The notes: a model not told the origin generated them from the sequence alone. A DNA stretch of 64,000 nt from Hyalangium minutum (GCF_000737315.1 NZ_JMCB01000003.1:620001-684000); one strand, 5' to 3'; positions 52,665 to 64,000 are shown, counted from the stretch's first letter. Translations and numbers: made by a program.

Positions 52665-53933
52665 TCAGCGCCCCTTCCCTGCCTGCCAGGTCCGCAGCAG
52701 CTCCTTCAGCTTCTCCGGCTGGTTGAGGGAGGGCTCATCAAGCACGGTATCGAGGAGGAACCGGGTGGCCTCGCCAACGATGGCCGAGGGACCCACGCCG
52801 AGCGTGGCCATGATGTCCCCGCCCGTCAGGGCCAGGTCCTTGGTGGTCAGAGGAGGCTTTGCGGCAGCGAGGGCACGCAGCCGCTCCTGGAGTTGAGTGA
52901 ACTCGGGGAGCCGCTCGGGTGAGCGGACCTGCACCCGGGCACGAGCGACCGCGAGCAAGGGCTCCAGCTGGCCGAGCCCCGTTCGAGCAAGCAGGCGCCT
53001 GAGCGCTGGGTCGCCGTCGCTGAAGCGCTTCTCGAGGACAGCATGCTCAACGAGGAGCCCCACCGTCTCGGCGACCTTATTGGGGAACTTGAGGCGGATG
53101 CCGAGCTCCCGGGCCTGCGGGCCGGTGACGAGATCCGCCAGCAAGGCGGCCATCCGGAGCTCGGCCTCGGCTGGGACGGCATGAGCGGCGGCACGGGCGA
53201 GCCGTGCGGCCTCGGCATCCGCGCGAGCCAGCTCGGGAAGGAAAACCTCGAGCAGCCCCGTCTCGGCCAGCAGCACGAGGCCAGACTCGGCGCGCGGCGA
53301 GAGGAGCACCTTGACGAACTCCTCGCGCACGCGCTCCAGGGCGACCTTGCGGAACACTGGGAGCGTGGGAGGAATGGCGGCGCGAGTGGAGGGCTCGAGC
53401 ATGAAGCCGAGCACCGTCGCGAAGCGCACCGCGCGCATGGGGCGCAGGCCATCCTCGGAGAAGCGCTCGTGCGGGTCGCGCACGCAGCGGATGACATGGG
53501 CCTGCAGGTCCGCTTGGCCACCGAACGGATCGACGAGATCCCGGCTGATGGGATCGTAGGCCATGGCGTTGATGGTGAAGTCGCGGCGAGAGAGGTCCTC
53601 GGTGATGTCGCTCTCGAACTTGACGGTGCTGGGGCGGCGGCCGTCGTGATAGTCGCCCTCGCTGCGGAAGGTGGTGACCTCGACGTGGGTGCCACCGATG
53701 ACGACCGTCACCGTGCCGTGCTGGATGCCAGTGGGGATGACCTTCTTGAAGGCCGCCTGGACCTCGTGCGGGTGAGCGCTGGTGGTGACGTCGAAGTCCT
53801 TGGGAGGGACGCCGCGGACCATGTCACGGACGCAGCCACCGACGAGGAAGACGGCGAAGCCCAGCTCGCGCAGGCGCCGGAGGACGTCGAGGACCGGGCG
53901 CGGGATGTCGGCGTTGTGGAGGTTCGCGAGCAT
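52665..53933 (-). CDS. cca: Class II tRNA nucleotidyltransferase (CCA-adding enzyme family)
   Basis: [20 protein letters not shown], flexible loop [44 protein letters not shown]. Confidence 0.9.
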
Positions 53934-53958
53934 CGGCCGCGCTGCGGGAGGGAGAGAG

Positions 53959-54032
53959 TGACCCCGACAGGAATCGAACCTGTGACCTGTGGTTTAGGAA
54001 ACCACCGCTCTATCCAACTGAGCTACGGGGCC
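53959..54032 (-). tRNA. tRNA-Arg (anticodon CCU); CCA end not encoded
   Basis: Minus strand GGCCCCG TA GCTC AGTTGGATA GAGC G GTGGT TT-CCT-AA ACCAC AGGTC ACAGG TTCGATT CCTGT CGGGGTC A gives a complete cloverleaf; followed by CTC, not CCA. Confidence 0.95.
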
Positions 54033-54146
54033 GGACCACCTAATTGGGTGCCTTATAGCAGGAGACCCGGTGCGCGCAACGAGCGGAAGGACGTAGCCGC
54101 ACTCCCTGGGGCTGACCGAACCGCCAACGCCCACCTGACAGTGTTC

Positions 54147-54938
54147 TCACCCCGTCACTGTCAGGAACTGCGGAGCTTGGTCCCTCCGGAGCGGGAGGGT
54201 CCGCTGGCAGCGTACCTTCAAGGGCAGCCCTCGGGCCCGACGCACCCCCACCGCTGCCATGTGCCGCTGAGAAGGGCCCAGTTGGACGAACTGCCAGGTC
54301 TCCGGGTCGTCCTTCAGCCGTGGATCGAAGGCGATCCGGGGATGCTCTCCGGGCTGAAGTTCGAACGCGAACTGCTCCAGCGGCAGGGAGAGCCCCATCC
54401 CTCGCGCCTTGATGTACGCCTCCTTCAAGGTCCAGTACTCGAAGAAGCGCGCCCGCTGGCGCGAGGCTTCCAACGCCCTGAGTGCCTTGACCTCCGAAGG
54501 CGCGAAGAACCGGTCGGCGATCTCCACCGTCTCTCCCTTCCGGAGGGCATCCTCCACATCCACGCCCACGTCCGTGTCTCGCGCCACCGCCACCATCACC
54601 ATCCCGTCCGTGTGGCTGAGGTTGAAGCGCAGCCATGCGTTCCCCTCCCCCTCCACTCGCGGGCAGCCGTACTCGTTCGTGACGAAGGTCCACTCCTGGG
54701 GCTCCACGGGCGCGTAGCGCGACAGCGTCAGCCGCACCAGCGCATGCGAGACCAGGTACTGCCGCTGGTGCTTCTCGAAATAGAACCGGCGCTGCTTCTC
54801 TCGCTCCTCGGGGTTCAGCAGACCCAGGTACGTATCCAGCAAGCCCGGGTCTTCTATCTCCTCGGGTACAGCCATCCAGACGTGGACCTCGTCCTGCGGC
54901 AGCGGCATCAACGAATGCGGGGAAGAGCCCGGTGTCAT
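54147..54938 (-). CDS. Sfp-type 4'-phosphopantetheinyl transferase
   Basis: YGCP, FNLSHT, VGVDVE, FFEYWTLKEAYIKARGMGL; start 54938 or 54908. Confidence 0.92.
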   Translation of the reverse strand: MTPGSSPHSLMPLPQDEVHVWMAVPEEIEDPGLLDTYLGLLNPEEREKQRRFYFEKHQRQYLVSHALVRLTLSRYAPVEPQEWTFVTNEYGCPRVEGEGNAWLRFNLSHTDGMVMVAVARDTDVGVDVEDALRKGETVEIADRFFAPSEVKALRALEASRQRARFFEYWTLKEAYIKARGMGLSLPLEQFAFELQPGEHPRIAFDPRLKDDPETWQFVQLGPSQRHMAAVGVRRARGLPLKVRCQRTLPLRRDQAPQFLTVTG

Positions 54939-55074
54939 GTAGGGCCAAGCGAAGCAGGCTCCGTCCTCCTTGTCACGAACCCCATACGTCCATGCCTCCC
55001 CGTCCCACCTCCCTCCAGCTAGGCTGATCCCTGACTGCTCGCGGCCATATCCGCCGCGCCTCCCGGGAGCCCCT

Positions 55075-56277
55075 GTGGACCTCCGCACCGCGACGCCCAA
55101 ACTCCAGACGCTCCGCGCTCTGATGACCGGTCACACTGATCGCCACGAGGAGCAGCAGATCCTCCAGCTCTTCGAGGCCGCCACCGCCGCCGAGCTCAAC
55201 TACCTGCTCACCAATGTGGATGTGGAGGCGCTCTTCTCCGACGTGGACGACCGGCTCGTCGGCCCGGACAATCTCACCGCGTTACTCGAGCTGCTGTGCG
55301 TCAAGCGCGCCCACGAACTGGGCTTACCCGTACGCGGCGGCCTCATGTTCTCGCTCCAGAAGGGCCCCACTCCCCTGTTGGCCGAGCGGATGATCCGAGC
55401 CCTCTTCCTCGGCCTGCGCGGCCGCGAGCTCACCGAGTTCAAGAACCTGCTCGATGGCCGGGGCAACTACCGGGACCTGCAGCAGCTCGTGTTCTCCGAT
55501 GTGGATGATCCGGCCATCCGCCAGGACATCCTCGACCACATCCAGCGCGAGGCCCTCACCGCCCCGAGCGGCGAGAACAAGGTCCTCAGCGACATCGACG
55601 ACACGTTCATCTGCAACTGGAAGGACACGCGCTACCCGCCCAAGACCGTGTACCCCGGCGTGCTCCAGTTCTACCGCGAGCTCGATCGCGGTCCCGGCGT
55701 CATCCCCGGCCGCGAGGGCGATCTGACCTTCGTCAGTGCCCGGCCCATGGATCCCCTCGGGTTCATCGAAGACAAGACGCTCGAGACTCTGCGCCAGCAT
55801 GGGGTGGGCGCGGCGGTGATGCTCGCCGGCGCCTTCACCCACCTCATCGGCAACGCCCGCATCGCGGAGAAGAAGTTCGACAACTTCACCCGCTATGCCC
55901 AGCTCTATCCCGAATATGGCTTCGTCTTCACCGGCGACAGCGGCCAGGGAGACGTGGCCTTCGGCGAGCAGATGCTGGCGGCCCACCCGGCCCTGGTCCG
56001 CGCCATCTTCATTCACGACGTCGTCGCCACCCCCGAGTCCGTCCGGAAGGCCTGGCGCGCCCAGCGCATCTTCTTCTTCGACACCTATGTGGGCGCCGCC
56101 GTGGAGGCCTATGAGGTGGGCGTCATCGCCAGGGACGGCGTGGCCCGCGTGGCCCGCGCCACCCAGGAAGAGCTGGAGAAGATCACCTTCACCTCCGAGG
56201 CTCAGCGCCAGGATCGGCGCGAGGAGCTCACCCGGGATCTCCAGCGCGCCGAGGCCCTCAGTGCTCCTCGGCCATGA
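55075..56277 (+). CDS. App1-like phosphatidate phosphatase (HAD-like, DUF2183)
   Basis: KVLSDIDDT (DxDDT), VYPGV, FVSARP, FTGDSGQGD; GTG 55075 after GGAG. Confidence 0.75.
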   Translation: MDLRTATPKLQTLRALMTGHTDRHEEQQILQLFEAATAAELNYLLTNVDVEALFSDVDDRLVGPDNLTALLELLCVKRAHELGLPVRGGLMFSLQKGPTPLLAERMIRALFLGLRGRELTEFKNLLDGRGNYRDLQQLVFSDVDDPAIRQDILDHIQREALTAPSGENKVLSDIDDTFICNWKDTRYPPKTVYPGVLQFYRELDRGPGVIPGREGDLTFVSARPMDPLGFIEDKTLETLRQHGVGAAVMLAGAFTHLIGNARIAEKKFDNFTRYAQLYPEYGFVFTGDSGQGDVAFGEQMLAAHPALVRAIFIHDVVATPESVRKAWRAQRIFFFDTYVGAAVEAYEVGVIARDGVARVARATQEELEKITFTSEAQRQDRREELTRDLQRAEALSAPRP

Positions 56278-58969
56278 CGCCGACATCCAGCGCGAGATCG
56301 AAGGAGAGATCCGGCGAGGTCGCCCCCACCTGCTTCACCATCACCGCGAGGGTGTTCTCCCCCACCACGAACGGATTGGGTGACAGCGCCAGGTTCACGG
56401 TCTCCTGCTGGTTGTTCACGCTCAGCGAGGCGTACTTGGCATGCGCCGGGTTGTTCACGTTGCGCGAGAACACCTGCACTCCATTGACGTAGACCACCAC
56501 CCCGTCATCAAAGAGCGCGCGCAGGGTGGCCGACATGGCCATGCTCGGGAGGGTGAACTTCTTGCGGAAGTAGACGGAGGTCTGCGCGGGAGCTGTCTTG
56601 TTGAGCACCGTGGCCTCGTCCAAGTCTCCGTAGCCCAGCTGCCCCGCGCCGGATCTCCACGCCGAGTCATTGAAGCTTGGCTGGTTCCACGAAGCTCCCG
56701 GATCCAGGCCGCTGTCCTCGTACTTCCACGTGGAGCCGAACGCGATCACCGACAGGCGAAGCTGCTCACTGATCGTGAAGGGAGCATCGCTCGCGTCCGA
56801 TAGCCCCCCCCCTGCCTTGGTGACCCGTACCAGCGCCTGGGTGGTTTCCACGGTGGGCACCCTCCACGAATAGCCCCCCGAACTGGACGACACCCCCGAG
56901 GCAATGGGCGTCCAGGTAGCTCCCAGATCCGTCGAGTACGCCAGATCCACCGCGGTCACGCTCCCCCCGCTGTCCCAGCGAAGAGAGACAATCCGCCCGG
57001 GATGGAGGGTCTCGCCTCCATTGGGCGTCACCATGCGCAGCGAGTCCGGGAGCGGCCCCTGCATCTTCTCCACCTCGAGCCCCAGCGCGAAGGTCAGGTC
57101 ATTCGAGCCGCCACCCACCTGCTTCACGATCGCCGTGATGACGTTCTCGCCGACCACGAACGGGTTGGGTGACATGGGCAGCGTGGCCCGGCTGTACTCA
57201 TTGGTCGCGGACGACGAGGCATAGAGGGAGAAACCAACCCCCCTGTCCACGTACTTGGAGAAGACCGGCACGCCATTGATCCACACCTGCACGCCGTCAT
57301 CGTGCAGCACATCCAGACGCGCGACCGTGATCGGCGCATCCAGGGTGAACTTCTTGCGGAAGTACACGGAGGGCTGCGACGGAATGGTGCGGGGGATCAC
57401 CGTGTTCTCGTCCCCGTCTCCGAAGCCGAGTTGCCCTGGCCCTGACGGCCATGCCGAGTCGTCATAGTCCACCGAGATCCACGACGTGCCGAGATCCACG
57501 TTGCTGGCCTCGTACTTCCAGACGTCGCTGAAGTTGATGACCCGGGTGCCCTTGGGCTTCACCGCCTCCACCCGGACGATCCTCGCCACGGAAGGCACCC
57601 CCTGCGCGTTCACCAGGAAGAGCATGTACGGCCCCGGAGGCGCCGCGATGCTCGTCTCAGGCGCGGTGACGGAGATGCCCCCACCCGCTGGCGTGAAGTT
57701 CAGCGTGAGCAACCGCTGGTTCTGATCGAACGCATGCGTCACCGAGGCCAGGGAGATCAGCGTCACCTTCTGGATCCCCGTATCAGGCGTGGACACGAAG
57801 AAGCGCGTCCCGGGCGTTACCACGGCCGGCGCCGAGGAAATTCTCGGACGCGGCCCCTTGAAGAGGTAGGGAGGCGAGAACACCTGCGCGGTGTGCACCA
57901 GACGTCCGCCCGCACTGAGCACCCGCCCATCCGGCAACAGCACCGAGGTGGAGTGATACCCCCGGTAGGCCGAGCCGTTGGCGAGCGACGTCCACGTGTT
58001 CGTGGCGGGATTCCAGACCTCCGCGTGGTAGGCCGCCCCGTCGGCGTTGTTGAATCCACTGGCACTGCTGCCGCCTGTCACCAGCACCGTGCCATCCGGC
58101 AGCAAGGTGGTGTTGTGCTGCCGCCGAGGCACGCTCATGGGCGCCATGGCCTGCCACGTGGGCGCGTCGCTGTTGAGATCCAGGAGTTCCACCGTTTCCG
58201 TCGGAGGATTCCCTCCCCCCACGAGCAGGATCTTGTTGTCGAACATCACCGCGCCACCGTACGGCCTCCCCTCGCTGAAGAGAGTCTGCGCGGACTCGAA
58301 CCACACCCCCGTCCCCTCCGGCTCCAGGTAGTAGGTCGTCTGCCCCGGCCCGACGTAGAGAAGCTTGCCGTTGGGCGCCAGGAACATTCGCGGGTAGTAC
58401 GGCAGATTCATCCTCGCCGTGGTGAGGCTCCTCCACGTGCTTGAGGCCGCATCCCAGCGCTGCGGGAGATCGTTGTTCGTGCCCGCCCCCGTGGTCTCGC
58501 CGGACAGCACGACCACGTCCCCGTTGGGCAGCGTCGTATTCGTGGGATACCAGCGCTTGTCGTTCATGTCCGGCGCGTGATCCCACGAGGACGTGAGCGG
58601 GTTGAAGATGACCGCGTGGGGCTCGCCCACATGCGACTCCATGTGTCCCCCGGTGATGAGCAGCCGACCATCGGCCAGGTATGAGTGCCCCGAGCAGAAG
58701 ATGTTGTAGTGCGGCTGGGGCAGCTCCGAGAGGTTGTCCGTGACGGGATCCCAGAGATAGGGCCAGAAGCCCTCCTCGAACTCCCCGAAGAAGAACACCT
58801 TGCCCGTAGGCAGCATGGTGACGTGGGTCGCGGAGATGGGCCACGTCACCAGCGGCCCCCACTGGCCAGACTCCGAGGGGCTCTGTGCCTCCGCAGGATT
58901 GTTCCACAAGATCCACGCCACACACAGAACCCGCACTCCAAGTCTCAGCCACGGACCGCAAGCTCTCAT
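56258..58969 (-). CDS. fbfB: Secreted galactose-oxidase-like copper radical oxidase (AA5/Kelch + DUF1929) with C-terminal beta-sandwich domains; FbfB-like
   Basis: Signal peptide (AEA/Q); IFCSG (Cys), RWYPT (Tyr), RGYHS (Tyr-His), SVTHAF (His), APPGPYMLF. The symbol rests on recalled divergent fbfA/fbfB synteny in Stigmatella. Confidence 0.85.
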   Translation of the reverse strand: MRACGPWLRLGVRVLCVAWILWNNPAEAQSPSESGQWGPLVTWPISATHVTMLPTGKVFFFGEFEEGFWPYLWDPVTDNLSELPQPHYNIFCSGHSYLADGRLLITGGHMESHVGEPHAVIFNPLTSSWDHAPDMNDKRWYPTNTTLPNGDVVVLSGETTGAGTNNDLPQRWDAASSTWRSLTTARMNLPYYPRMFLAPNGKLLYVGPGQTTYYLEPEGTGVWFESAQTLFSEGRPYGGAVMFDNKILLVGGGNPPTETVELLDLNSDAPTWQAMAPMSVPRRQHNTTLLPDGTVLVTGGSSASGFNNADGAAYHAEVWNPATNTWTSLANGSAYRGYHSTSVLLPDGRVLSAGGRLVHTAQVFSPPYLFKGPRPRISSAPAVVTPGTRFFVSTPDTGIQKVTLISLASVTHAFDQNQRLLTLNFTPAGGGISVTAPETSIAAPPGPYMLFLVNAQGVPSVARIVRVEAVKPKGTRVINFSDVWKYEASNVDLGTSWISVDYDDSAWPSGPGQLGFGDGDENTVIPRTIPSQPSVYFRKKFTLDAPITVARLDVLHDDGVQVWINGVPVFSKYVDRGVGFSLYASSSATNEYSRATLPMSPNPFVVGENVITAIVKQVGGGSNDLTFALGLEVEKMQGPLPDSLRMVTPNGGETLHPGRIVSLRWDSGGSVTAVDLAYSTDLGATWTPIASGVSSSSGGYSWRVPTVETTQALVRVTKAGGGLSDASDAPFTISEQLRLSVIAFGSTWKYEDSGLDPGASWNQPSFNDSAWRSGAGQLGYGDLDEATVLNKTAPAQTSVYFRKKFTLPSMAMSATLRALFDDGVVVYVNGVQVFSRNVNNPAHAKYASLSVNNQQETVNLALSPNPFVVGENTLAVMVKQVGATSPDLSFDLALDVGVMAEEH
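56270..57545 (-). repeat. Intragenic duplication of a ~160-aa domain (copy 1 ~57065-57545, copy 2 ~56270-56760)
   Basis: VINFSDVWKY...SAWPSGPGQLGFGDGDENTV...SVYFRKKFTL...DDGVQVWING...PNPFVVGENVI...DLTFAL vs VIAFGSTWKY...SAWRSGAGQLGYGDLDEATV...SVYFRKKFTL...DDGVVVYVNG...PNPFVVGENTL...DLSFDL. Confidence 0.9.
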
Positions 58970-59172
58970 TCTGCCCCCTGAGTTCGTCGGTGGGCAGGCA
59001 ACCTAATATCGACACACCCGAGTCCAAGGATCCCTCACAGCCGAGCGCCGTGCGCGACAGAGGACGTCAGCCCGCGCTCAGCCCGGTGCATCACCCTCCA
59101 AGGCAGGTTGCTCCCCAGCGTCGGGGGCTCGACCTTTCGCGCCGCACAGGCACGCGGAGGGCTTCTTGACCG

Positions 59173-60402
59173 ATGGAACTCTTTCCCATCCAGATGCTGT
59201 TCCTCGTTGTGCTGATGAACCGCTACATCCTCGGGCCGCTGCTGCGGCGGCTCCAAGGTCCCCGGTTCGATGCCACGAACGACGACTATGAGCCCACCGT
59301 GGCCATCATCATCCCGCTCTACAACGAGGGTGAGGGCATCTACCACGCCATCCTCAGCCTCCTCGAGCAGGACTACCCAGCGGACAAGCTGCAGATCATC
59401 GTCGTCGACGACTGCTCGAAGGACGACAGCTACGCGTGGGCCCAGAAGGCCGCCCAGGGCCGCCGCAATGTCCTGGTGATGCGCAACCCCACCAACATGG
59501 GCAAGCGCAAGGGCATCAACCGCGGCGTGCGCGCCACCCAGGCGGAGATCATCGTCTCGGTGGACTCGGACGTGATCGTGGATCGCAGCGCCGTGCGCCA
59601 GCTCATCCGCCGGTTCCTCTACCCGAACGTGGCCGCCGTCGGGGGCCGCACGTATGTGACCAACCGCCACCAGAACTGGCTCACGCGCATGATCGAGATC
59701 AAGTTCCACTTCGCCCAGGAGTGGCTCAAGGATCTGGAGCGGAGCTTCCGCACGGTGATGTGCCTGTCGGGCTGCCTCACCGCGTACCGCCGCAGCGTGC
59801 TGGAGGAGCTGGAGCCCATCCTCGAGGCCCGCGCCATCGCGGGTATCCCCATCAAGTACGGCGAGGACCGCTTCCTCACCCGCCAGATCATCAAGGCGGG
59901 CTACGAGACCATCTACACGACCGAGGCGTTCTGCTTCACCGCCGCGCCCGCCAACCTGGCCGGCTACTTCGCGCAGCAGCTGCGCTGGCGGCGCTCCAAC
60001 CTGGTGGACATGATCGGCGGGCTGAGCCACGCGTGGCGGCTGCACCCTGTCGTCGCCGTCCACTACGTCTCGCAGCTCGCGCTGCTGCTCTCCTACCCCA
60101 TCGTCATCATCCACAACGTCCTGAACGATGAGTTCTGGGACATCCTCACCATGCACGTGCTGGTGGTGGCCTTCCTGGGCTTCATCTACCGCAGGGAGAC
60201 CCGCCACCTGCCCGAGGACCGCCGCGTCCCCGCACTCTGCTTCCTTCCCATGGCGCTGATGATGCCGGTCACCTATGCGCTCTTCACTCCCTTGGCCCTG
60301 CTGACCCTGGACTCGGGCAGCTGGGAGACCCGCGGCAGTCCCGCCAGCGCGGTCCCGTCTCCACCCCAGGATCTCTCGCTCTCCTCCTCTTCACCCGGGT
60401 AG
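59173..60402 (+). CDS. fbfA: Processive GT2 glycosyltransferase, hyaluronan-synthase/NodC/chitin-synthase-like; FbfA-like
   Basis: PLYNE, VVDDCSKD, GKR, SVDSD (DxD), CLSGCL, GEDRFLT, QQLRWRR (QxxRW); one N-terminal and about three C-terminal TM segments. Confidence 0.88.
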   Translation: MELFPIQMLFLVVLMNRYILGPLLRRLQGPRFDATNDDYEPTVAIIIPLYNEGEGIYHAILSLLEQDYPADKLQIIVVDDCSKDDSYAWAQKAAQGRRNVLVMRNPTNMGKRKGINRGVRATQAEIIVSVDSDVIVDRSAVRQLIRRFLYPNVAAVGGRTYVTNRHQNWLTRMIEIKFHFAQEWLKDLERSFRTVMCLSGCLTAYRRSVLEELEPILEARAIAGIPIKYGEDRFLTRQIIKAGYETIYTTEAFCFTAAPANLAGYFAQQLRWRRSNLVDMIGGLSHAWRLHPVVAVHYVSQLALLLSYPIVIIHNVLNDEFWDILTMHVLVVAFLGFIYRRETRHLPEDRRVPALCFLPMALMMPVTYALFTPLALLTLDSGSWETRGSPASAVPSPPQDLSLSSSSPG

Positions 60403-60410
60403 GACGTTCC

Positions 60411-61505
60411 ATGAACCAGCAAGTCGCCAACAAAGTGAACTCGGTCGCCGTGAACGCCTACAAGGCGCTGGGCACCGTCCTGCTCGGCCTCATCTTGCTC
60501 GGGTTCATCAGCTACTTGAGCCTCCAAGGCTTCTTCCTCGTGAGCCGGAGCTGGGTGGCACCCACCATCCTCTCCCCCACGGATCCAGAGATCCTCCAAC
60601 TCAACGCGCAGCTCGCCCAGCAGACCTCCGCGCGAGATCAGGTGCTCTCCCACCGAAGAGAGGTCCAGGATCGCCTCAAGGACGCCGAGCGCACCGTCGC
60701 CGCCGAGGAGGACTTCCAGCAGCGCTTCCAAGCCGCGCTGCGCGGTGAGCGCACCTCCCGGAAGCAGGCTCTGCGACGCATGGCCTCCCTGCTCCACACG
60801 TACCAGCAGGCCCGCCAGGAGATCGAGGAGTCCAACCGCGCCTACTCCGGCCTGTCTCGCGTGCGCACCGAGGCGCTCTATGGCGCCCGGCTGCTCGATC
60901 AAGAGGCCCACCTCACCACCAACCACCAGTTGGCGCAGATCGCCCAGAGCAACCTCACGCTGGCGGAGCATGCCGTGGATCTGGAGACGCGGCAGCAAGA
61001 GCTGCGGCGGGAGATTCAGGGCATTGACGCCGCGAGGGCCGGACGCCAAGGCGAAGCCCCCGCGATGACCACGGAGGTGCTCCTGCTGGAGCGCGAGCAC
61101 ACCCGCTCCGTGCTGGAACACGCCCGAACCGAGTCCCTTCGAAATGCGCTCCAGGAGGATCTGCGAGCGCTCGATTCGGCCGCGGAGCGGTACGAGAAGC
61201 TGCTCAGCACCATCCGGGCCGCCCCGCACCTGCGGGCCCTCGAGGGGAACCTCACGGTGGCATTCGTTCCGTACGATAACTTGGAGAGCGCACCTCCTGG
61301 CACGCCGCTCTACGCCTGCTCGGCGAAGTTGGTGTGGTGCCATCAGGTCGGCGTCGTGGGCACGGTGCTGGAGGGAGAGGTGGCGGTGAAGCACCCCATC
61401 CGCCAGCACATCCTGCGAGGCGTCATGGTGGAGCTCCATCTGCAAGACAGGGCCTCTGCCCAGGAAGAGCTGCTGCACCTGGGACGGCCTCCGCTTCTTC
61501 TGTAG
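60411..61505 (+). CDS. Membrane-fusion-protein-like periplasmic adaptor (TM + long coiled coil + beta domain)
   Basis: N-terminal TM (GTVLLGLILLGFISYLSLQGFFLV), ~230 aa Q/E/R-rich helical region, C-terminal beta-rich LTVAFVPYDNL...VGVVGTV...GVMVELHL. Confidence 0.7.
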   Translation: MNQQVANKVNSVAVNAYKALGTVLLGLILLGFISYLSLQGFFLVSRSWVAPTILSPTDPEILQLNAQLAQQTSARDQVLSHRREVQDRLKDAERTVAAEEDFQQRFQAALRGERTSRKQALRRMASLLHTYQQARQEIEESNRAYSGLSRVRTEALYGARLLDQEAHLTTNHQLAQIAQSNLTLAEHAVDLETRQQELRREIQGIDAARAGRQGEAPAMTTEVLLLEREHTRSVLEHARTESLRNALQEDLRALDSAAERYEKLLSTIRAAPHLRALEGNLTVAFVPYDNLESAPPGTPLYACSAKLVWCHQVGVVGTVLEGEVAVKHPIRQHILRGVMVELHLQDRASAQEELLHLGRPPLLL

Positions 61506-61524
61506 CGCCACTGGAGATAGGCAA

Positions 61525-62619
61525 TTGAGGATATCCATCATCGGGAGCACCCTGCTCTGCCTCGCCGCCTGGCATTCGGCGCGAGCCCAGTCAGCCGAGA
61601 CACAGTGGTGCGAGTACATCCGGGGCGTGACCGACTCGGAGACTGCGGTGCTGCTAGCACCCGAGGTCTTCGCCAGCACGGGCATGGTGAACGCCGGAGA
61701 GGCCACGAGCGGAGCCGGAAGTGCTCCGCTGGGGGAACCCAAGCTCCGGATCACCGCGGGCCTGGGCTACGAGCTCGTCGGAGTCTACCGGGGAATGACG
61801 ATCCGACAGCGCGCGGAGGCAGAGTGCCGCCGCCATCAGGCCATTCTGGCGCTTCAGTCCGCGTTGGCGTCCGGACCCGATGCGGGAGCCGGTCCCGCGT
61901 TGAAGGCGCGGCTCGCGGTGCTCGAGCCGGCGCTCCCCGAGGGGGAGCGGATGGTGGAGTCTCTGCGAACGGACGTGCGGGAGGGCCGGGCCACCTTGGA
62001 GGAGCTCGACGCGCTCCAGCTCCGCTTGGATGCCCTCCGGGCCCTGGCGGCGGACACCCTCCGTGCCCAGGAGCGCCTCGCGCACCTGCCTCCCCGGCCG
62101 GAGCAGTCTCTGTCCACGCTGCTCCAGGAGCTACGAGACGCGGAGGATGAGATCGAGCGGCTCTCCGGCAAGGTGCGCCGATCCACCGCCTGGAGCGTTA
62201 CCCTGCGGGGTGGCTACGACGAGCTGATCGACGTGCCCCAGGATCTGCCCCTCTTTGGAACGCTCACCGTCTCCTACAAGCTCGGAGGCCTGAGCCAGTC
62301 CGCGGCCAACCAGCGGGCGCGTTCGGCCCGGCCGAAGGCCCTCGGTGAGGAGGTGGAGGGGCTGCCCCAGCGTGTGGAGCGGCTGCTCGAGCAGCTGCGC
62401 GCCACCCGAAGCGCCGAACAGACCCGGCTGCGAGAGGTCACCGTGCTCATCGGAGATCTGGAAGGCCAGCTCCAGTCCATCCAGTCCCTGGAGACAAGCA
62501 AGATTCGCCGCTTCCATGACTACGTCGTCCTCGAGCTGGCGCGGCTGCGGGCGGAGCAGGCCTGGCTTCGCGCTCACCTGGATGCACTCGGCACTTTTCT
62601 GGGAAGGGAGACACCATGA
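61525..62619 (+). CDS. Exported helical protein with TolC-like beta-strand pairs
   Basis: TTG start after GGAG; signal peptide (ARA/Q); two amphipathic strand pairs (LRITAGLGYELVG; WSVTLRGGY...LFGTLTVSYKLGG) separated by long helices. The TolC likeness is inferred. Confidence 0.6.
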   Translation: MRISIIGSTLLCLAAWHSARAQSAETQWCEYIRGVTDSETAVLLAPEVFASTGMVNAGEATSGAGSAPLGEPKLRITAGLGYELVGVYRGMTIRQRAEAECRRHQAILALQSALASGPDAGAGPALKARLAVLEPALPEGERMVESLRTDVREGRATLEELDALQLRLDALRALAADTLRAQERLAHLPPRPEQSLSTLLQELRDAEDEIERLSGKVRRSTAWSVTLRGGYDELIDVPQDLPLFGTLTVSYKLGGLSQSAANQRARSARPKALGEEVEGLPQRVERLLEQLRATRSAEQTRLREVTVLIGDLEGQLQSIQSLETSKIRRFHDYVVLELARLRAEQAWLRAHLDALGTFLGRETP

Positions 62620-63269
62620 GGTCACCACTGTTCGTCCTGGCGCTGGGGCTCATCAGCCCCGCGCCCATCGCCTGCGCGGGTGAAATGACGCCAACACACT
62701 TCCAGCAAGTCTCCCTCGAGAGTTTCAAAACCACGGAGGGAGTGCTCAAGCCGGGCCAGAAGGAGGGGCAGGTTCTTGTCGACGTCCCCAAGATGCGTGC
62801 GGTCGTCCCCTCCTCCTCCTCCTCAGTGGCGGAGCTGCACTTCACCTACCTGGGACCCACCAGACGCCAACTGCCTCTGGCCTCTGGAGAGAATCGCCTG
62901 CAGGTGGGCCTGAAGCTGCGCGCCCAAGATGCCTGCAATCTGGCGTACGTGATGTGGCGGCTCGCCCCCGAGCCTGGCCTGGTCGTGTCCATCAAGTCCA
63001 ACCCGGGTGACCACGACAGCGACTCTTGCGGGAACCGGGGCTACACCAACTTGGAGCCTCGCCAGGCAGTGCCCGTCCCCCTCATCGTCAAGGGAGACTC
63101 CCACGTGCTCCGCGCGGAGCAGGAAGGGAAGGTGCTGCGCGTCTTCGCGGATGGCATCCTCGTCTGGGAGGGCGAGCTCCCTCGCGAGGCGCTCGCCCTC
63201 AAGGGGCCCGTGGGCCTGCGCTCGGACAACGGCCGCTTCGAGCTGGAGATGTTCGCCCTCCAGCCCTGA
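62616..63269 (+). CDS. Exported ConA-like/DUF1080-like beta-sandwich protein
   Basis: ATGA overlap; signal peptide; SHVLRAEQEGKVLRVFADG...GPVGLRSDNG is a ConA-like end pattern. Confidence 0.65.
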   Translation: MRSPLFVLALGLISPAPIACAGEMTPTHFQQVSLESFKTTEGVLKPGQKEGQVLVDVPKMRAVVPSSSSSVAELHFTYLGPTRRQLPLASGENRLQVGLKLRAQDACNLAYVMWRLAPEPGLVVSIKSNPGDHDSDSCGNRGYTNLEPRQAVPVPLIVKGDSHVLRAEQEGKVLRVFADGILVWEGELPREALALKGPVGLRSDNGRFELEMFALQP

Positions 63270-63282
63270 AGCCTGCTCGAGC

Positions 63283-64000
63283 TCAGGGCTCGGGCCGAAC
63301 CCCCGGCGAGGCCGCAGCCCTGTCACGCTCCGGTTCCCGCTTGAGCTCCGCCTCGTGCGAGCACCGGGCGTCGATCGAGGCCCCGTTCAGCGGACACCGT
63401 CCGCTGTCGCGCAGATCGAACTGCCAGCGGTGCCGAGGACACACCAGGTACCGGCCATCCTCCACCCAGGCCTCGGCCAGATCCGCGCCCTGGTGCGGGC
63501 AGTAGCGCAGCACGGAGTAGCGCATATCCCCTGCCACCACCGTGGTGCGCTCGCGCCGGGACTCCGTGGCGCGGATGCCGTCGCAGAACTCGTGCAGGTC
63601 GTCGATCTCCAGCCCCACGAAGCCGTGGAGGATCGGCTCGTAGACGTCCGGGTTCCGGCTCATCCGGTGCCGCAGGGACAGCAGGAAGTCCTCCCAGTTG
63701 AGCTTGCGCTCCAGGACCCGAGCAATGTCCACCGCGTTCACCGTCATCGTGTACCGGGTCGTGTCCCGGATCGACGGGACGACCTCCACCTGCCGCAACT
63801 GGAAGTCCACCCGCAACAGCCGCGTCGGTGCCTCTCGAACCATGACGTACAGCGGCATTCCCACCCGCTTGTGCAGATCCAGCTGATCCAGCTTGCGCCG
63901 CAGCTCCACCCGCAACAGCTCGTGGATCTCCGCGACCTCGGCGCGCAGGATGTTGTGGTGCCGTGCCGTGAACACGTGCGCCTGGTCCATCGCGTACGCA
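63283..64000 (-). CDS. C-terminal Rieske [2Fe-2S] protein, 5'-truncated by window end
   Basis: RYCPHQGADL...VCPRHRWQFDL (CxH...CxxH). The frame is open past the tracked Met 63990 to the window edge (A-Y-A-M). Confidence 0.8.
   Translation of the reverse strand, partial: AYAMDQAHVFTARHHNILRAEVAEIHELLRVELRRKLDQLDLHKRVGMPLYVMVREAPTRLLRVDFQLRQVEVVPSIRDTTRYTMTVNAVDIARVLERKLNWEDFLLSLRHRMSRNPDVYEPILHGFVGLEIDDLHEFCDGIRATESRRERTTVVAGDMRYSVLRYCPHQGADLAEAWVEDGRYLVCPRHRWQFDLRDSGRCPLNGASIDARCSHEAELKREPERDRAAASPGVRPEP

Follow-up and report, generated by a model that had tools for sequence, protein, structure and literature searches.

The locus, its conserved four-gene unit and the fbf genes

The window analyzed here is a 64,000-nucleotide stretch of the Hyalangium minutum genome (GCF_000737315.1 NZ_JMCB01000003.1:620001-684000), and the genes under study lie in its last part. 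They comprise a gene for a copper radical oxidase (CRO), a divergently oriented gene for a synthase of glycosyltransferase family 2 (GT2), and three genes downstream of the latter, called g3, g4 and g5 in order; a gene for a metallo-beta-lactamase (MBL)-Rieske protein converges on g5 (Table 1). On balance, we favor the view that the four-gene operon GT2-g3-g4-g5 encodes a self-contained machine for synthase-dependent glycan secretion. A first-pass annotation of this DNA had listed these six genes with their spacings, and the open reading frame (ORF) calls and our base-by-base reading of the junctions agreed with it. GT2 and g3 are separated by 8 bp and g3 and g4 by 19 bp, the stop of g4 and the start of g5 overlap as ATGA, and g5 and the Rieske gene end 13 bp apart. 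The GC content at third codon positions (GC3) is 83-94% in every called frame, compared with a window GC of 67.8%, indicating that the frames behave as real genes of a high-GC genome. A promoter and terminator scan found no terminator-like site within the four-gene run and no sigma-70-like site in the 203-bp spacer between CRO and GT2, the scan being blind to sigma-54 and other myxobacterial promoter types.

We placed the proteins of the window by tblastn on 27 related loci, 21 obtained through a GT2 search and 6 through exact look-ups of g3 relatives. GT2 and g3 were adjacent and co-directional in all of them. g4 came next in 26, the contig of the remaining locus stopping before it, and g5 followed in 24, with two contigs that stop and one locus with a replacement. 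Amino acid identities to the window proteins were 57-88% for GT2, 35-79% for g3, 31-75% for g4 and 45-60% for g5. The cassette was found in loci of Myxococcus (M. xanthus among them), Corallococcus, Pyxidicoccus, Hyalangium, Stigmatella, Melittangium and Vulgatibacter, and also in a Polyangiaceae metagenome-assembled genome (MAG), in MAGs of unclassified Myxococcota, including deep-branching ones, and in unassigned metagenome contigs; the families covered by the named loci include Myxococcaceae, Archangiaceae and Polyangiaceae. With 27 independent loci sharing it at 31-88% identity, the GT2-g3-g4(-g5) arrangement is, on this synteny comparison, far beyond chance, and the co-conservation that had been proposed for the four genes was confirmed. 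Because these genes are kept and the CRO side varies among the same loci, the conserved unit, as mapped here, is the four-gene operon, and the flanking DNA carries lineage-specific glycan-modifying enzymes.

The locus had also been linked to the fbfA and fbfB genes of Stigmatella, and three observations support that link. The order and orientation of the genes are the same in S. erecta, with identities of 59% for CRO, 83% for GT2, 66% for g3, 63% for g4 and 56% for g5; fbfB is STAUR_4011, which adjoins a divergently transcribed glycosyltransferase gene (PMC3543389); and the g4 and g5 orthologues of S. aurantiaca DW4/3-1 have consecutive accession numbers. Judged from gene order and similarity, the window locus is thus the orthologue of the Stigmatella fbfA/fbfB locus, GT2 corresponding to the NodC/chitin-synthase-like FbfA and CRO to the galactose-oxidase-like FbfB. 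Both genes were reportedly tied to fruiting-body formation in Stigmatella in studies dating from 1996-98, and in the 1996 study fbfA mutants are said to have been partly rescued by mixing with other mutants. Our literature search found no paper naming MXAN_3481-3484 or STAUR_4008-4010 in its main text, and for fbfC and fbfD it returned unrelated acronyms only, so the naming "FbfA/B/C/D" was not confirmed. The three genes downstream of fbfA appear to be undescribed, with fbfA and fbfB the only ones that have published phenotypes.

The M. xanthus orthologues are MXAN_3484 (GT2), MXAN_3483 (g3), MXAN_3482 (g4), MXAN_3481 (g5) and MXAN_3480 (MBL-Rieske), among which MXAN_3484, MXAN_3482 and MXAN_3480 were assigned by position and annotation. 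In a 96-h developmental RNA-seq series of this species, MXAN_3484, MXAN_3483 and MXAN_3482 rose from approximately 27-48 reads per kilobase per million (RPKM) at 0-12 h to 126-138 RPKM at 48 h. With MXAN_3480 included, the values were approximately 27-55 RPKM at 0-12 h and peaked at 126-217 at 48 h, and all of these genes belong to developmental group 8 (PMC6791715). In a second data set, in which the 2000 most variable genes were grouped by K-means, MXAN_3481-3484 came together in a single cluster (PMC8561891). Developmental co-expression, which had been named at first pass as a check, is therefore found in published data, in which MXAN_3482-3484 rise together to a peak at 48 h.

Two candidate interpretations of the cassette were rejected. 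A strict tie to fruiting or stalk formation does not agree with its presence in a Vulgatibacter genome and in deep-branching Myxococcota MAGs, Vulgatibacter being a genus without reported fruiting bodies (PMC8561891). A type I protein secretion system was discarded because an ATP-binding cassette (ABC) transporter was linked in 0 of the 27 loci.

Table 1. Coordinates of the features discussed, in the window or in the related locus (L number) given
Feature	Location	Strand	Remarks
CRO gene	56258-58969	-	903 aa
CRO/GT2 divergent spacer	58970-59172	.	203 bp, read base by base; presumed promoter region both ways
GT2 synthase	59173-60402	+	409 aa
g3	60411-61505	+	364 aa
g4	61525-62619	+	364 aa, TTG start
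g5	62616-63269	+	217 aa
MBL-Rieske gene, 3' part	63283-64000	-	open to window edge
Carbohydrate esterase family 4 (CE4) polysaccharide deacetylase (Polysacc_deac_1)	L083 5134-6510	-	Vulgatibacter sp., divergent from GT2 in CRO position
Heparinase II/III-like lyases	L020 14926-16902; L084 3213-6355	-	flank two distant cassettes, one with glycoside hydrolase family 16 (GH16)
Right-handed beta-helix protein (Beta_helix)	L020 13618-14913	+	replaces g5, same stop/start overlap
MBL-Rieske orthologues	L081 12068-13678; L083 11012-12637; L002 14316-16130		604-aa ORF in L002

The synthase and the three downstream proteins

GT2 matched Glycos_transf_2 (1.3e-31) and Chitin_synth_2 (1.9e-16) in Pfam. Its top NCBIfam model was NodC, with 180 bits over positions 40-394 of 395 and thus short of the cutoff of 550; PgaC/IcaA (117 bits, cutoff 422) and CelA (44 bits, cutoff 699) were also below threshold. 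The closest relatives in the PDB were hyaluronan synthases (HAS; 8smm, 7e-20), with an alignment extending into the transmembrane region. The motifs DDCSKDD (residues 79-85, in VVDDCSKDD from 77), DSD (131), GEDR (230) and QQLRW (268) do not vary among the 27 orthologues, and GEDR and QQLRW align with GDDR and QQTRW of the hyaluronan synthases. Hydropathy indicates one N-terminal and three C-terminal hydrophobic segments, and no PilZ or other cyclic di-GMP (c-di-GMP) module was detected in GT2 by the Pfam and NCBIfam scans. The full motif set agrees with the initial description of GT2 as a processive synthase with QxxRW. As NodC and PgaC outscore CelA, hyaluronan synthases are the closest solved relatives and the motif set is intact, GT2 is, by its sequence, a member of the N-acetylglucosamine (GlcNAc)-using NodC/chitin synthase (CHS)/HAS branch, yet the equivalog of no named enzyme. 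Its product probably contains GlcNAc, a proposal supported by the CE4 and PIG-L deacetylase genes that neighbor the cassette in other loci.

The affinity with NodC raises the alternative that GT2 makes short chito-oligosaccharides, which the duct would export as a diffusible developmental signal and the oxidase or a deacetylase would modify or inactivate. NodC is the top family model and aligns end to end, and the size and one-plus-three topology of GT2 resemble those of NodC. The reported partial rescue of fbfA mutants by mixing would also suit a product that is shared outside the cell. However, the 180 bits obtained lie far under the 550-bit cutoff, and the nearest solved relatives are processive, translocating hyaluronan synthases. 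A dedicated duct and neighbors of the GH16, lyase and glycoside hydrolase family 2 (GH2) types also better suit a polymer, and extracellular rescue is equally expected of a shared matrix polymer. We therefore consider signal export unlikely.

Far less probable still is a glycolipid pathway, in which GT2 would glycosylate a membrane lipid, for example a ceramide or hopanoid, and the adaptor/TolC-like pair would export the product to the outer membrane, as DevBCA-HgdD does for the heterocyst glycolipids of cyanobacteria. GT2 does match Glyco_transf_21 (1.9e-12) and, weakly, HpnI/HpnB, but these matches are far weaker than those to NodC, PgaC and HAS. All orthologues have GEDR where the aligned HAS position has GDDR, and the EDR motif is that of chitin synthases and NodC. 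Moreover, no ABC transporter, which DevBCA needs, is linked to the cassette, and the neighboring enzymes act on polysaccharides.

For g3 and g4, AlphaFold2 (AF2) models were built on alignments of database relatives. That of g3 (predicted local distance difference test score [pLDDT], 88.5) consists of a helix at residues 2-44, a strand at 48-52, helices at 59-158, 164-210 and 221-269 and a beta-domain at 282-357. The helix 59-158 is predicted to run down and those at 164-210 and 221-269 to run back, forming a hairpin with an arm of approximately 100 residues. Hydropathy revealed one hydrophobic segment, at residues 20-38, and C303 and C310 are invariant among the aligned relatives. A Foldseek search of the PDB at E<=0.001 returned EmrA alone (4tko, 2.6e-5, aligned over all 326 residues); weaker matches included MacA and the EmrA chains of EmrAB-TolC, amid generic coiled coils. 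The model gives moderate support to g3 as an inner-membrane-anchored, periplasmic adaptor-like protein. The earlier label "membrane fusion protein-like" thus holds for the adaptor architecture, with EmrA as the sole significant structural match; nothing of it was recoverable by sequence search.

The AF2 monomer of g4 (pLDDT, 85.2; predicted TM-score, 0.72) is folded as two repeats, each composed of a beta-hairpin and then long helices, which gives four strands per protomer (47-56, 72-83, 223-234 and 243-251). At E<=0.001, 39 of 39 Foldseek matches in the PDB were TolC-family channels, namely CmeC, ST50, SilC, OprN, OprM, TolC, VceC, CusC and MtrE. E values were mostly approximately 1e-9 to 1e-7 with a probability of 1.00, and the TM-scores of 0.33-0.44 are expected because the monomer is very elongated. 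The N terminus is signal-peptide-like and C29 and C101 are invariant among relatives, features that fit export, and some g4 orthologues bear the UniRef name "TolC family protein." A TolC-family fold, that of a compact outer-membrane factor, is well supported by this model. The prediction bears out the "TolC-like" designation that g4 had received, although sequence searches show only coiled-coil noise.

No Pfam hit was obtained for g5, and PDB and NCBIfam searches gave no significant match. Hydropathy indicates an N-terminal hydrophobic leader, and C107 and C138 are invariant. A profile search of the whole library yielded a family of 924 representatives at 50% identity; among the best 150 of these 924 relatives, no informative known domain was present except in one protein of 1811 aa, which has fn3 and polysaccharide-lyase domains. 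Below threshold, family members matched 3keto-disac_hyd (8 of 104, best 0.0077), Laminin_G_2 (4 of 104) and Laminin_G_1 (2 of 104), a neurexin LNS domain was found in the PDB at E~1, and UniRef names two of the g5 orthologues "3-keto-disaccharide hydrolase domain-containing." As these recurrent sub-threshold matches are the sole basis for the "ConA-like" label given to g5 at first pass, we did not retain it as an assignment; g5 may have a ConA-like/LamG fold, which we keep as a lead.

Natural g4-g5 fusions place this protein more precisely. Three were found (P0415, P0458 and P0489; 580-627 aa), each approximately 35% identical to g4. Their N-terminal parts match the g4 family by hhalign with a probability of 100 and E values of 1e-51 to 1e-58, and the g5 domain is C terminal. 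The linkers are hydrophilic, proline rich and not signal-peptide-like, which argues against a frameshift artifact. This Rosetta-stone evidence indicates that the two proteins function as a unit, g5 being joined to the TolC-like protein at its periplasmic end when it works. An unrelated right-handed beta-helix protein stands in for g5 in one deep-branching locus, where a convergent gene for a heparinase II/III-like lyase follows. A right-handed beta-helix is characteristic of polysaccharide lyases, hydrolases and epimerases, and this displacement suggests that a periplasmic subunit acting on glycan is encoded at the fourth position of the operon. Each of g3, g4 and g5 has an invariant Cys pair, which together with the transmembrane segment of g3, the signal-peptide-like N terminus of g4 and the leader of g5 points to an envelope location for all three.

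Genes of the g5 family also occur outside the cassette. In one such case (L087 7001-9721), a stand-alone g5-family gene lies beside a convergent gene for a 648-aa protein with a Pfam OEP domain, and this pair may represent a second, independent association between the g5 family and a TolC-type protein.

Several of our results weigh against a synthase-fed duct. g3 matched nothing in Pfam and only SMC-type coiled-coil noise in NCBIfam, with no match to HlyD, HlyD_3, HlyD_D23 or Biotin_lipoyl_2, and its comparison with E. coli EmrA by hhalign gave a probability of 0.3%. Similarly, g4 had no Pfam OEP match at E<=0.01, and E. coli TolC aligned to the g4 family profile with an hhalign probability of 0.2%; both single-sequence and profile searches of the PDB returned coiled-coil noise only for the two proteins. 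The structural match of g3 to EmrA is modest (TM-score, 0.26-0.29) in a list crowded by coiled-coil proteins, and the g3 model has one beta-domain of approximately 75 residues, not the canonical pair of lipoyl domain and barrel. The C terminus of TolC is periplasmic and outside the channel wall, so that g5, placed after it, may not touch the passing glycan. NodC makes short oligomers in a closed pocket and does not translocate them; as the size and topology of GT2 are NodC-like, a transmembrane translocation channel is not assured. Finally, the heparinase II/III-like lyases at two distant cassettes would suit a chain with uronate rather than one indicated by the deacetylase genes, and the polymer may hold uronic acid in those lineages.

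Part of this evidence would suit accessory proteins that form no duct, with g3 as a co-polymerase-like factor for chain length or localization and g4 and g5 as an outer-membrane anchor, the glycan crossing the outer membrane otherwise or staying periplasmic. g3 lacks the lipoyl/beta-barrel pair and its structural matches are mostly generic coiled coils, and both g3 and g4 fall outside HlyD and OEP by sequence. Nevertheless, g4 matches channel-forming TolC-family proteins only, its four strands per protomer suit a 12-stranded trimeric barrel, and the sole significant match of g3 is a true adaptor that works with TolC. The GT2-g3-g4 order is also strict across the 27 loci, and no other porin gene was linked to the cassette in any of them. 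We thus regard an arrangement without a duct as improbable and retain the secretion machine as our working interpretation.

The copper radical oxidase and other flanking genes

Residues ~30-467 of CRO constitute a kelch propeller and E-set catalytic module, with Pfam matches to GO-like_E_set (1.4e-23), Kelch_6 and Glyoxal_oxid_N and PDB matches to galactose oxidase (9g8h, 8e-48) and GlxA (4unm, 6e-46). Against the NCBIfam GlxA model, CRO scored 229 bits over model positions 263-644 and did not reach the cutoff of 800; it is not a GlxA equivalog. The motifs FCSGH (C92), RWYPT (Y141), GYHST (Y338, H339) and VTHAF (H412) are conserved relative to 9g8h, and we take C92, Y141, Y338, H339 and H412 to be the Cys-Tyr cofactor, the axial Tyr and the copper-ligand His residues. 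The N terminus resembles a cleavable signal peptide. A C-terminal extension of approximately 430 aa (~468-903) consists of two repeats (~477-636 and ~741-899; ~160 aa each, 53% identical, E=3e-47) that flank an Ig-like module. It gave weak matches only, to GH2-N, rhamnosidase-N, BetaGal_ABD2 and Kre9, and an extension of this type is lacking in fungal galactose oxidases and in GlxA. The length of CRO varies by genus, from 743 aa in S. erecta and 885 aa in Melittangium to an ORF of 969 aa in Pyxidicoccus. From these features, the active site is intact and the enzyme looks active, secreted and possibly glycan tethered. Horizontal transfer has been suggested for fbfB (PMC3543389); base composition gave no clear signal of a recent transfer of CRO (GC 0.650 versus 0.678, with a GC3 of 0.863 like that of its neighbors).

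The distribution of the oxidase gene speaks against an oxidation step as a fixed part of the pathway. Only 8 of the 27 loci have a CRO gene divergent from GT2, namely those of Hyalangium, two Pyxidicoccus species, P. fallax, Myxococcus sp. RHSTA-1-4, strain GXIMD 01537, S. erecta and Melittangium. M. xanthus, Corallococcus, Vulgatibacter and the deep-branching loci lack CRO next to the cassette, and the FbfB-like protein of M. xanthus, MXAN_5265, is encoded away from the cassette in a metal-responsive locus (PMC4937300). As CRO adjoins GT2 in so few loci, it is, on this mapping, a lineage-specific accessory outside the conserved core, and its initial treatment as a conserved member of the system was not upheld. 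On that side of GT2, Vulgatibacter has the CE4 deacetylase gene, which fits an N-acetylated polymer, and one metagenomic locus has GH16 and then a heparinase II/III-like lyase. In two loci, purine-biosynthesis genes are closest on the CRO side, with a PIG-L deacetylase gene nearby in one of them.

It may be that CRO is a mere neighbor acting on another substrate, for H2O2 generation or on small alcohols, and that its divergent position has no functional meaning. Its presence next to the cassette in 8 of 27 loci only and the metal-responsive setting of the M. xanthus FbfB-like gene (PMC4937300) agree with such a view. However, Hyalangium, Stigmatella, Melittangium, Pyxidicoccus and an unclassified genome of the Myxococcaceae share the divergent pairing, with identities of 55-78%, other carbohydrate-modifying enzymes stand beside the synthase gene elsewhere, and the two repeats of CRO weakly resemble sugar-binding domains. 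In addition, CslA-GlxA of Streptomyces is a proven complex of a GT2 and a CRO (PMC11022532), and, according to the titles of the respective studies, Stigmatella fruiting is affected by fbfA as well as by fbfB. We thus find a role of CRO unrelated to the glycan possible but rather doubtful.

The Rieske domain of the gene convergent on g5 was detected by Pfam (7.7e-9). The ORF call covers 63283-63990, but the frame stays open as far as base 63999. The gene is thus cut by the window edge and only its 3' part is present, which is a correction to the convergent gene annotated at first pass. Full-length orthologues of 536-604 aa have a metallo-beta-lactamase fold (Lactamase_B_3) followed by a Rieske [2Fe-2S] domain, with PDB matches to NAPE-PLD (7.6e-7) and a non-heme diiron monooxygenase (9e-5). 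In 15 of the 27 loci, an MBL-Rieske gene is found no more than 10 kb from the cassette. A related architecture that includes a Rieske domain is known from the sugar N-acetyl hydroxylases CMAH and NamH, and it is possible that the MBL-Rieske protein modifies the sugar or the polymer.

Additional genes were noted around the cassette. In Melittangium, a gene for a 1134-aa protein with PA14, GH2 and LamG domains lies directly 3' of g5 (L082 10982-14386, + strand), and in S. erecta a gene for a glycoside hydrolase family 19 chitinase with ricin-B lectin domains is located approximately 5 kb downstream (L081 15789-17000, + strand). A phosphopantetheinyl transferase gene adjoins CRO in both species, followed in S. 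erecta by a large polyketide synthase gene. In the window, a gene for an APP1-like phosphatidate phosphatase (54970-56277, + strand; APP1_cat, 6.4e-11) converges on CRO with a 20-bp 3' overlap. It is kept near the locus in Pyxidicoccus, Corallococcus and some Myxococcus species but not in M. xanthus, where both CRO and the APP1-like gene are missing alongside the cassette. Farther upstream, an ORF of 659 aa (53043-55022, + strand) overlaps a gene of the CCA-adding-enzyme/poly(A)-polymerase family on the opposite strand (52665-53933, - strand). Conservation of this ORF in related loci is limited to residues ~380-650, and the true start of the gene is thus probably near 54.1 kb.

A proposed glycan secretion machine and its relation to known systems

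In the machine that we propose, GT2, an inner-membrane synthase of the NodC/CHS/HAS type with intact motifs, would polymerize a GlcNAc-containing beta-glycan from UDP-sugars. As the operon encodes no transporter of the ABC, resistance-nodulation-division (RND) or major facilitator superfamily (MFS) type, the chain would be pushed out by polymerization itself. g3, held by one inner-membrane helix, would cross the periplasm with its hairpin arm of ~100 residues, roughly 150 Å long, and dock tip-to-tip with g4, and the nascent chain would pass from the synthase to the surface through one duct. In the models, the helical barrel of g4 (residues 84-152) measures ~100 Å and the 100-residue helix of g3 ~150 Å, and it is suggestive that these predicted lengths match what is needed to bridge the periplasm from a synthase without a periplasmic domain. 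g5 might perhaps bind, gate or trim the glycan, in the manner of periplasmic glycan-acting subunits known from other systems that depend on a synthase. CRO would oxidize the exported glycan at its primary alcohols (C6-OH), yielding aldehydes and thereby altering cross-linking or adhesion. We infer its action on the GT2 product from its neighborhood in some genera, from CslA-GlxA and from the polysaccharide-modifying neighbors of other lineages. Expression of the system is turned on during development, as is seen for the M. xanthus orthologues. The idea of a conduit gains real structural and comparative support from the predicted folds and the conserved gene order; the polymer, the assembly and the oxidation chemistry we infer.

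A broader interpretation, which we put forward tentatively, is that these genes represent an unrecognized developmental pathway in which a dedicated duct, a GlcNAc polymer and CRO might cross-link the wall of the fruiting body or sporangiole in sporangiole-forming genera. Such a pathway could be separate from the Wzx/Wzy-type exopolysaccharide (EPS), biosurfactant polysaccharide (BPS) and spore-coat systems and could explain the fbfA and fbfB phenotypes, though we would not count on either. It is also conceivable, at about the same low level of confidence, that the operon is the first whole tripartite synthase machine found in a single operon.

If our proposal is correct, the fbfA/fbfB puzzle of 1996-98, which has been without product or mechanism since, becomes a concrete and testable machine. 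M. xanthus, which carries the orthologues MXAN_3481-3484, is a species amenable to genetics. The oxidase, deacetylase, lyase and hydrolase neighbors suggest a modular tailoring of one exported polymer across lineages. The analysis also indicates that "hypothetical coiled-coil proteins" can conceal adaptor and TolC folds missed by sequence libraries.

The closest parallels in export architecture are two systems with TolC. An XcsAB-TolC route was proposed in 2018 for cyanobacterial cellulose, for which a 2025 review notes no experimental validation and parts that are not in one operon (PMC12430437), and in 2026 the BgsBA-dependent mixed-linkage glucan of S. meliloti was shown to need tolC (PMC13438883). 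XcsA-XcsB-TolC and BgsA-BgsB-TolC resemble the present system in having an inner-membrane GT2, an adaptor gene alongside and a TolC-type exit (PMC12430437, PMC13438883), and no tetratricopeptide repeat (TPR)/porin protein of the BcsC, PgaA or AlgK/E type. Among the scanned proteins of the region, no TPR, porin or PilZ model matched at E<=0.01, unlike in Bcs, Pga, Alg and Pel. The systems differ in several respects. The Xcs and Bgs synthases resemble BcsA and are under c-di-GMP control via a PilZ or C-terminal domain, whereas the GT2 described here is NodC/HAS-like with no PilZ detected. Their TolC is encoded outside the synthase operon, whereas a compact TolC-like protein of 364 aa is encoded within this one. 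Their adaptors are recognizable HlyD proteins, whereas g3 matches no HlyD model. The cassette further adds a fourth, TolC-associated subunit, g5, and modular accessory enzymes including CRO. The export of efflux-pump type inferred at first pass agrees with the lack of TPR/porin matches and with the TolC-like fold, but given the XcsAB-TolC and BgsBA-TolC precedents this export architecture is not categorically new. The model of a synthase with a membrane fusion protein and TolC is still a proposal, and having all tripartite parts in one packed, widely conserved operon is the strongest genomic argument so far for such machines and offers a cleaner system for structural work.

CslA-GlxA of Streptomyces likewise combines a membrane GT2 with a CRO, has a homologous oxidase catalytic module and is tied to morphological development, and the complex makes cellulose in vitro (PMC11022532). 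However, CslA is cellulose-synthase-like, whereas the GT2 of the window scores 44 bits for CelA versus 180 for NodC. cslA and glxA are co-directional in a putative operon (PMC3543389), whereas GT2 and CRO are divergent. GlxA is membrane associated (PMC11022532), whereas CRO has an apparent cleavable signal peptide and additional modules at its C terminus. The present host is diderm, an export duct is proposed, and the GT2-CRO pairing is not obligatory in Myxococcota.

EmrAB-TolC shares with the proposed machine an inner-membrane partner without a periplasmic domain, an adaptor with an unusually long alpha-hairpin and a TolC-family exit. Its inner-membrane partner is the proton-driven MFS transporter EmrB rather than a glycosyltransferase, g3 and g4 show no sequence similarity to EmrA and TolC, and the beta-region of g3 is reduced to one small domain. 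Finally, the fbf locus of Stigmatella has the same divergent CRO and GT2 genes followed by g3, g4 and g5, and differs in its oxidase, which has 743 aa in S. erecta compared with 903 aa in H. minutum.

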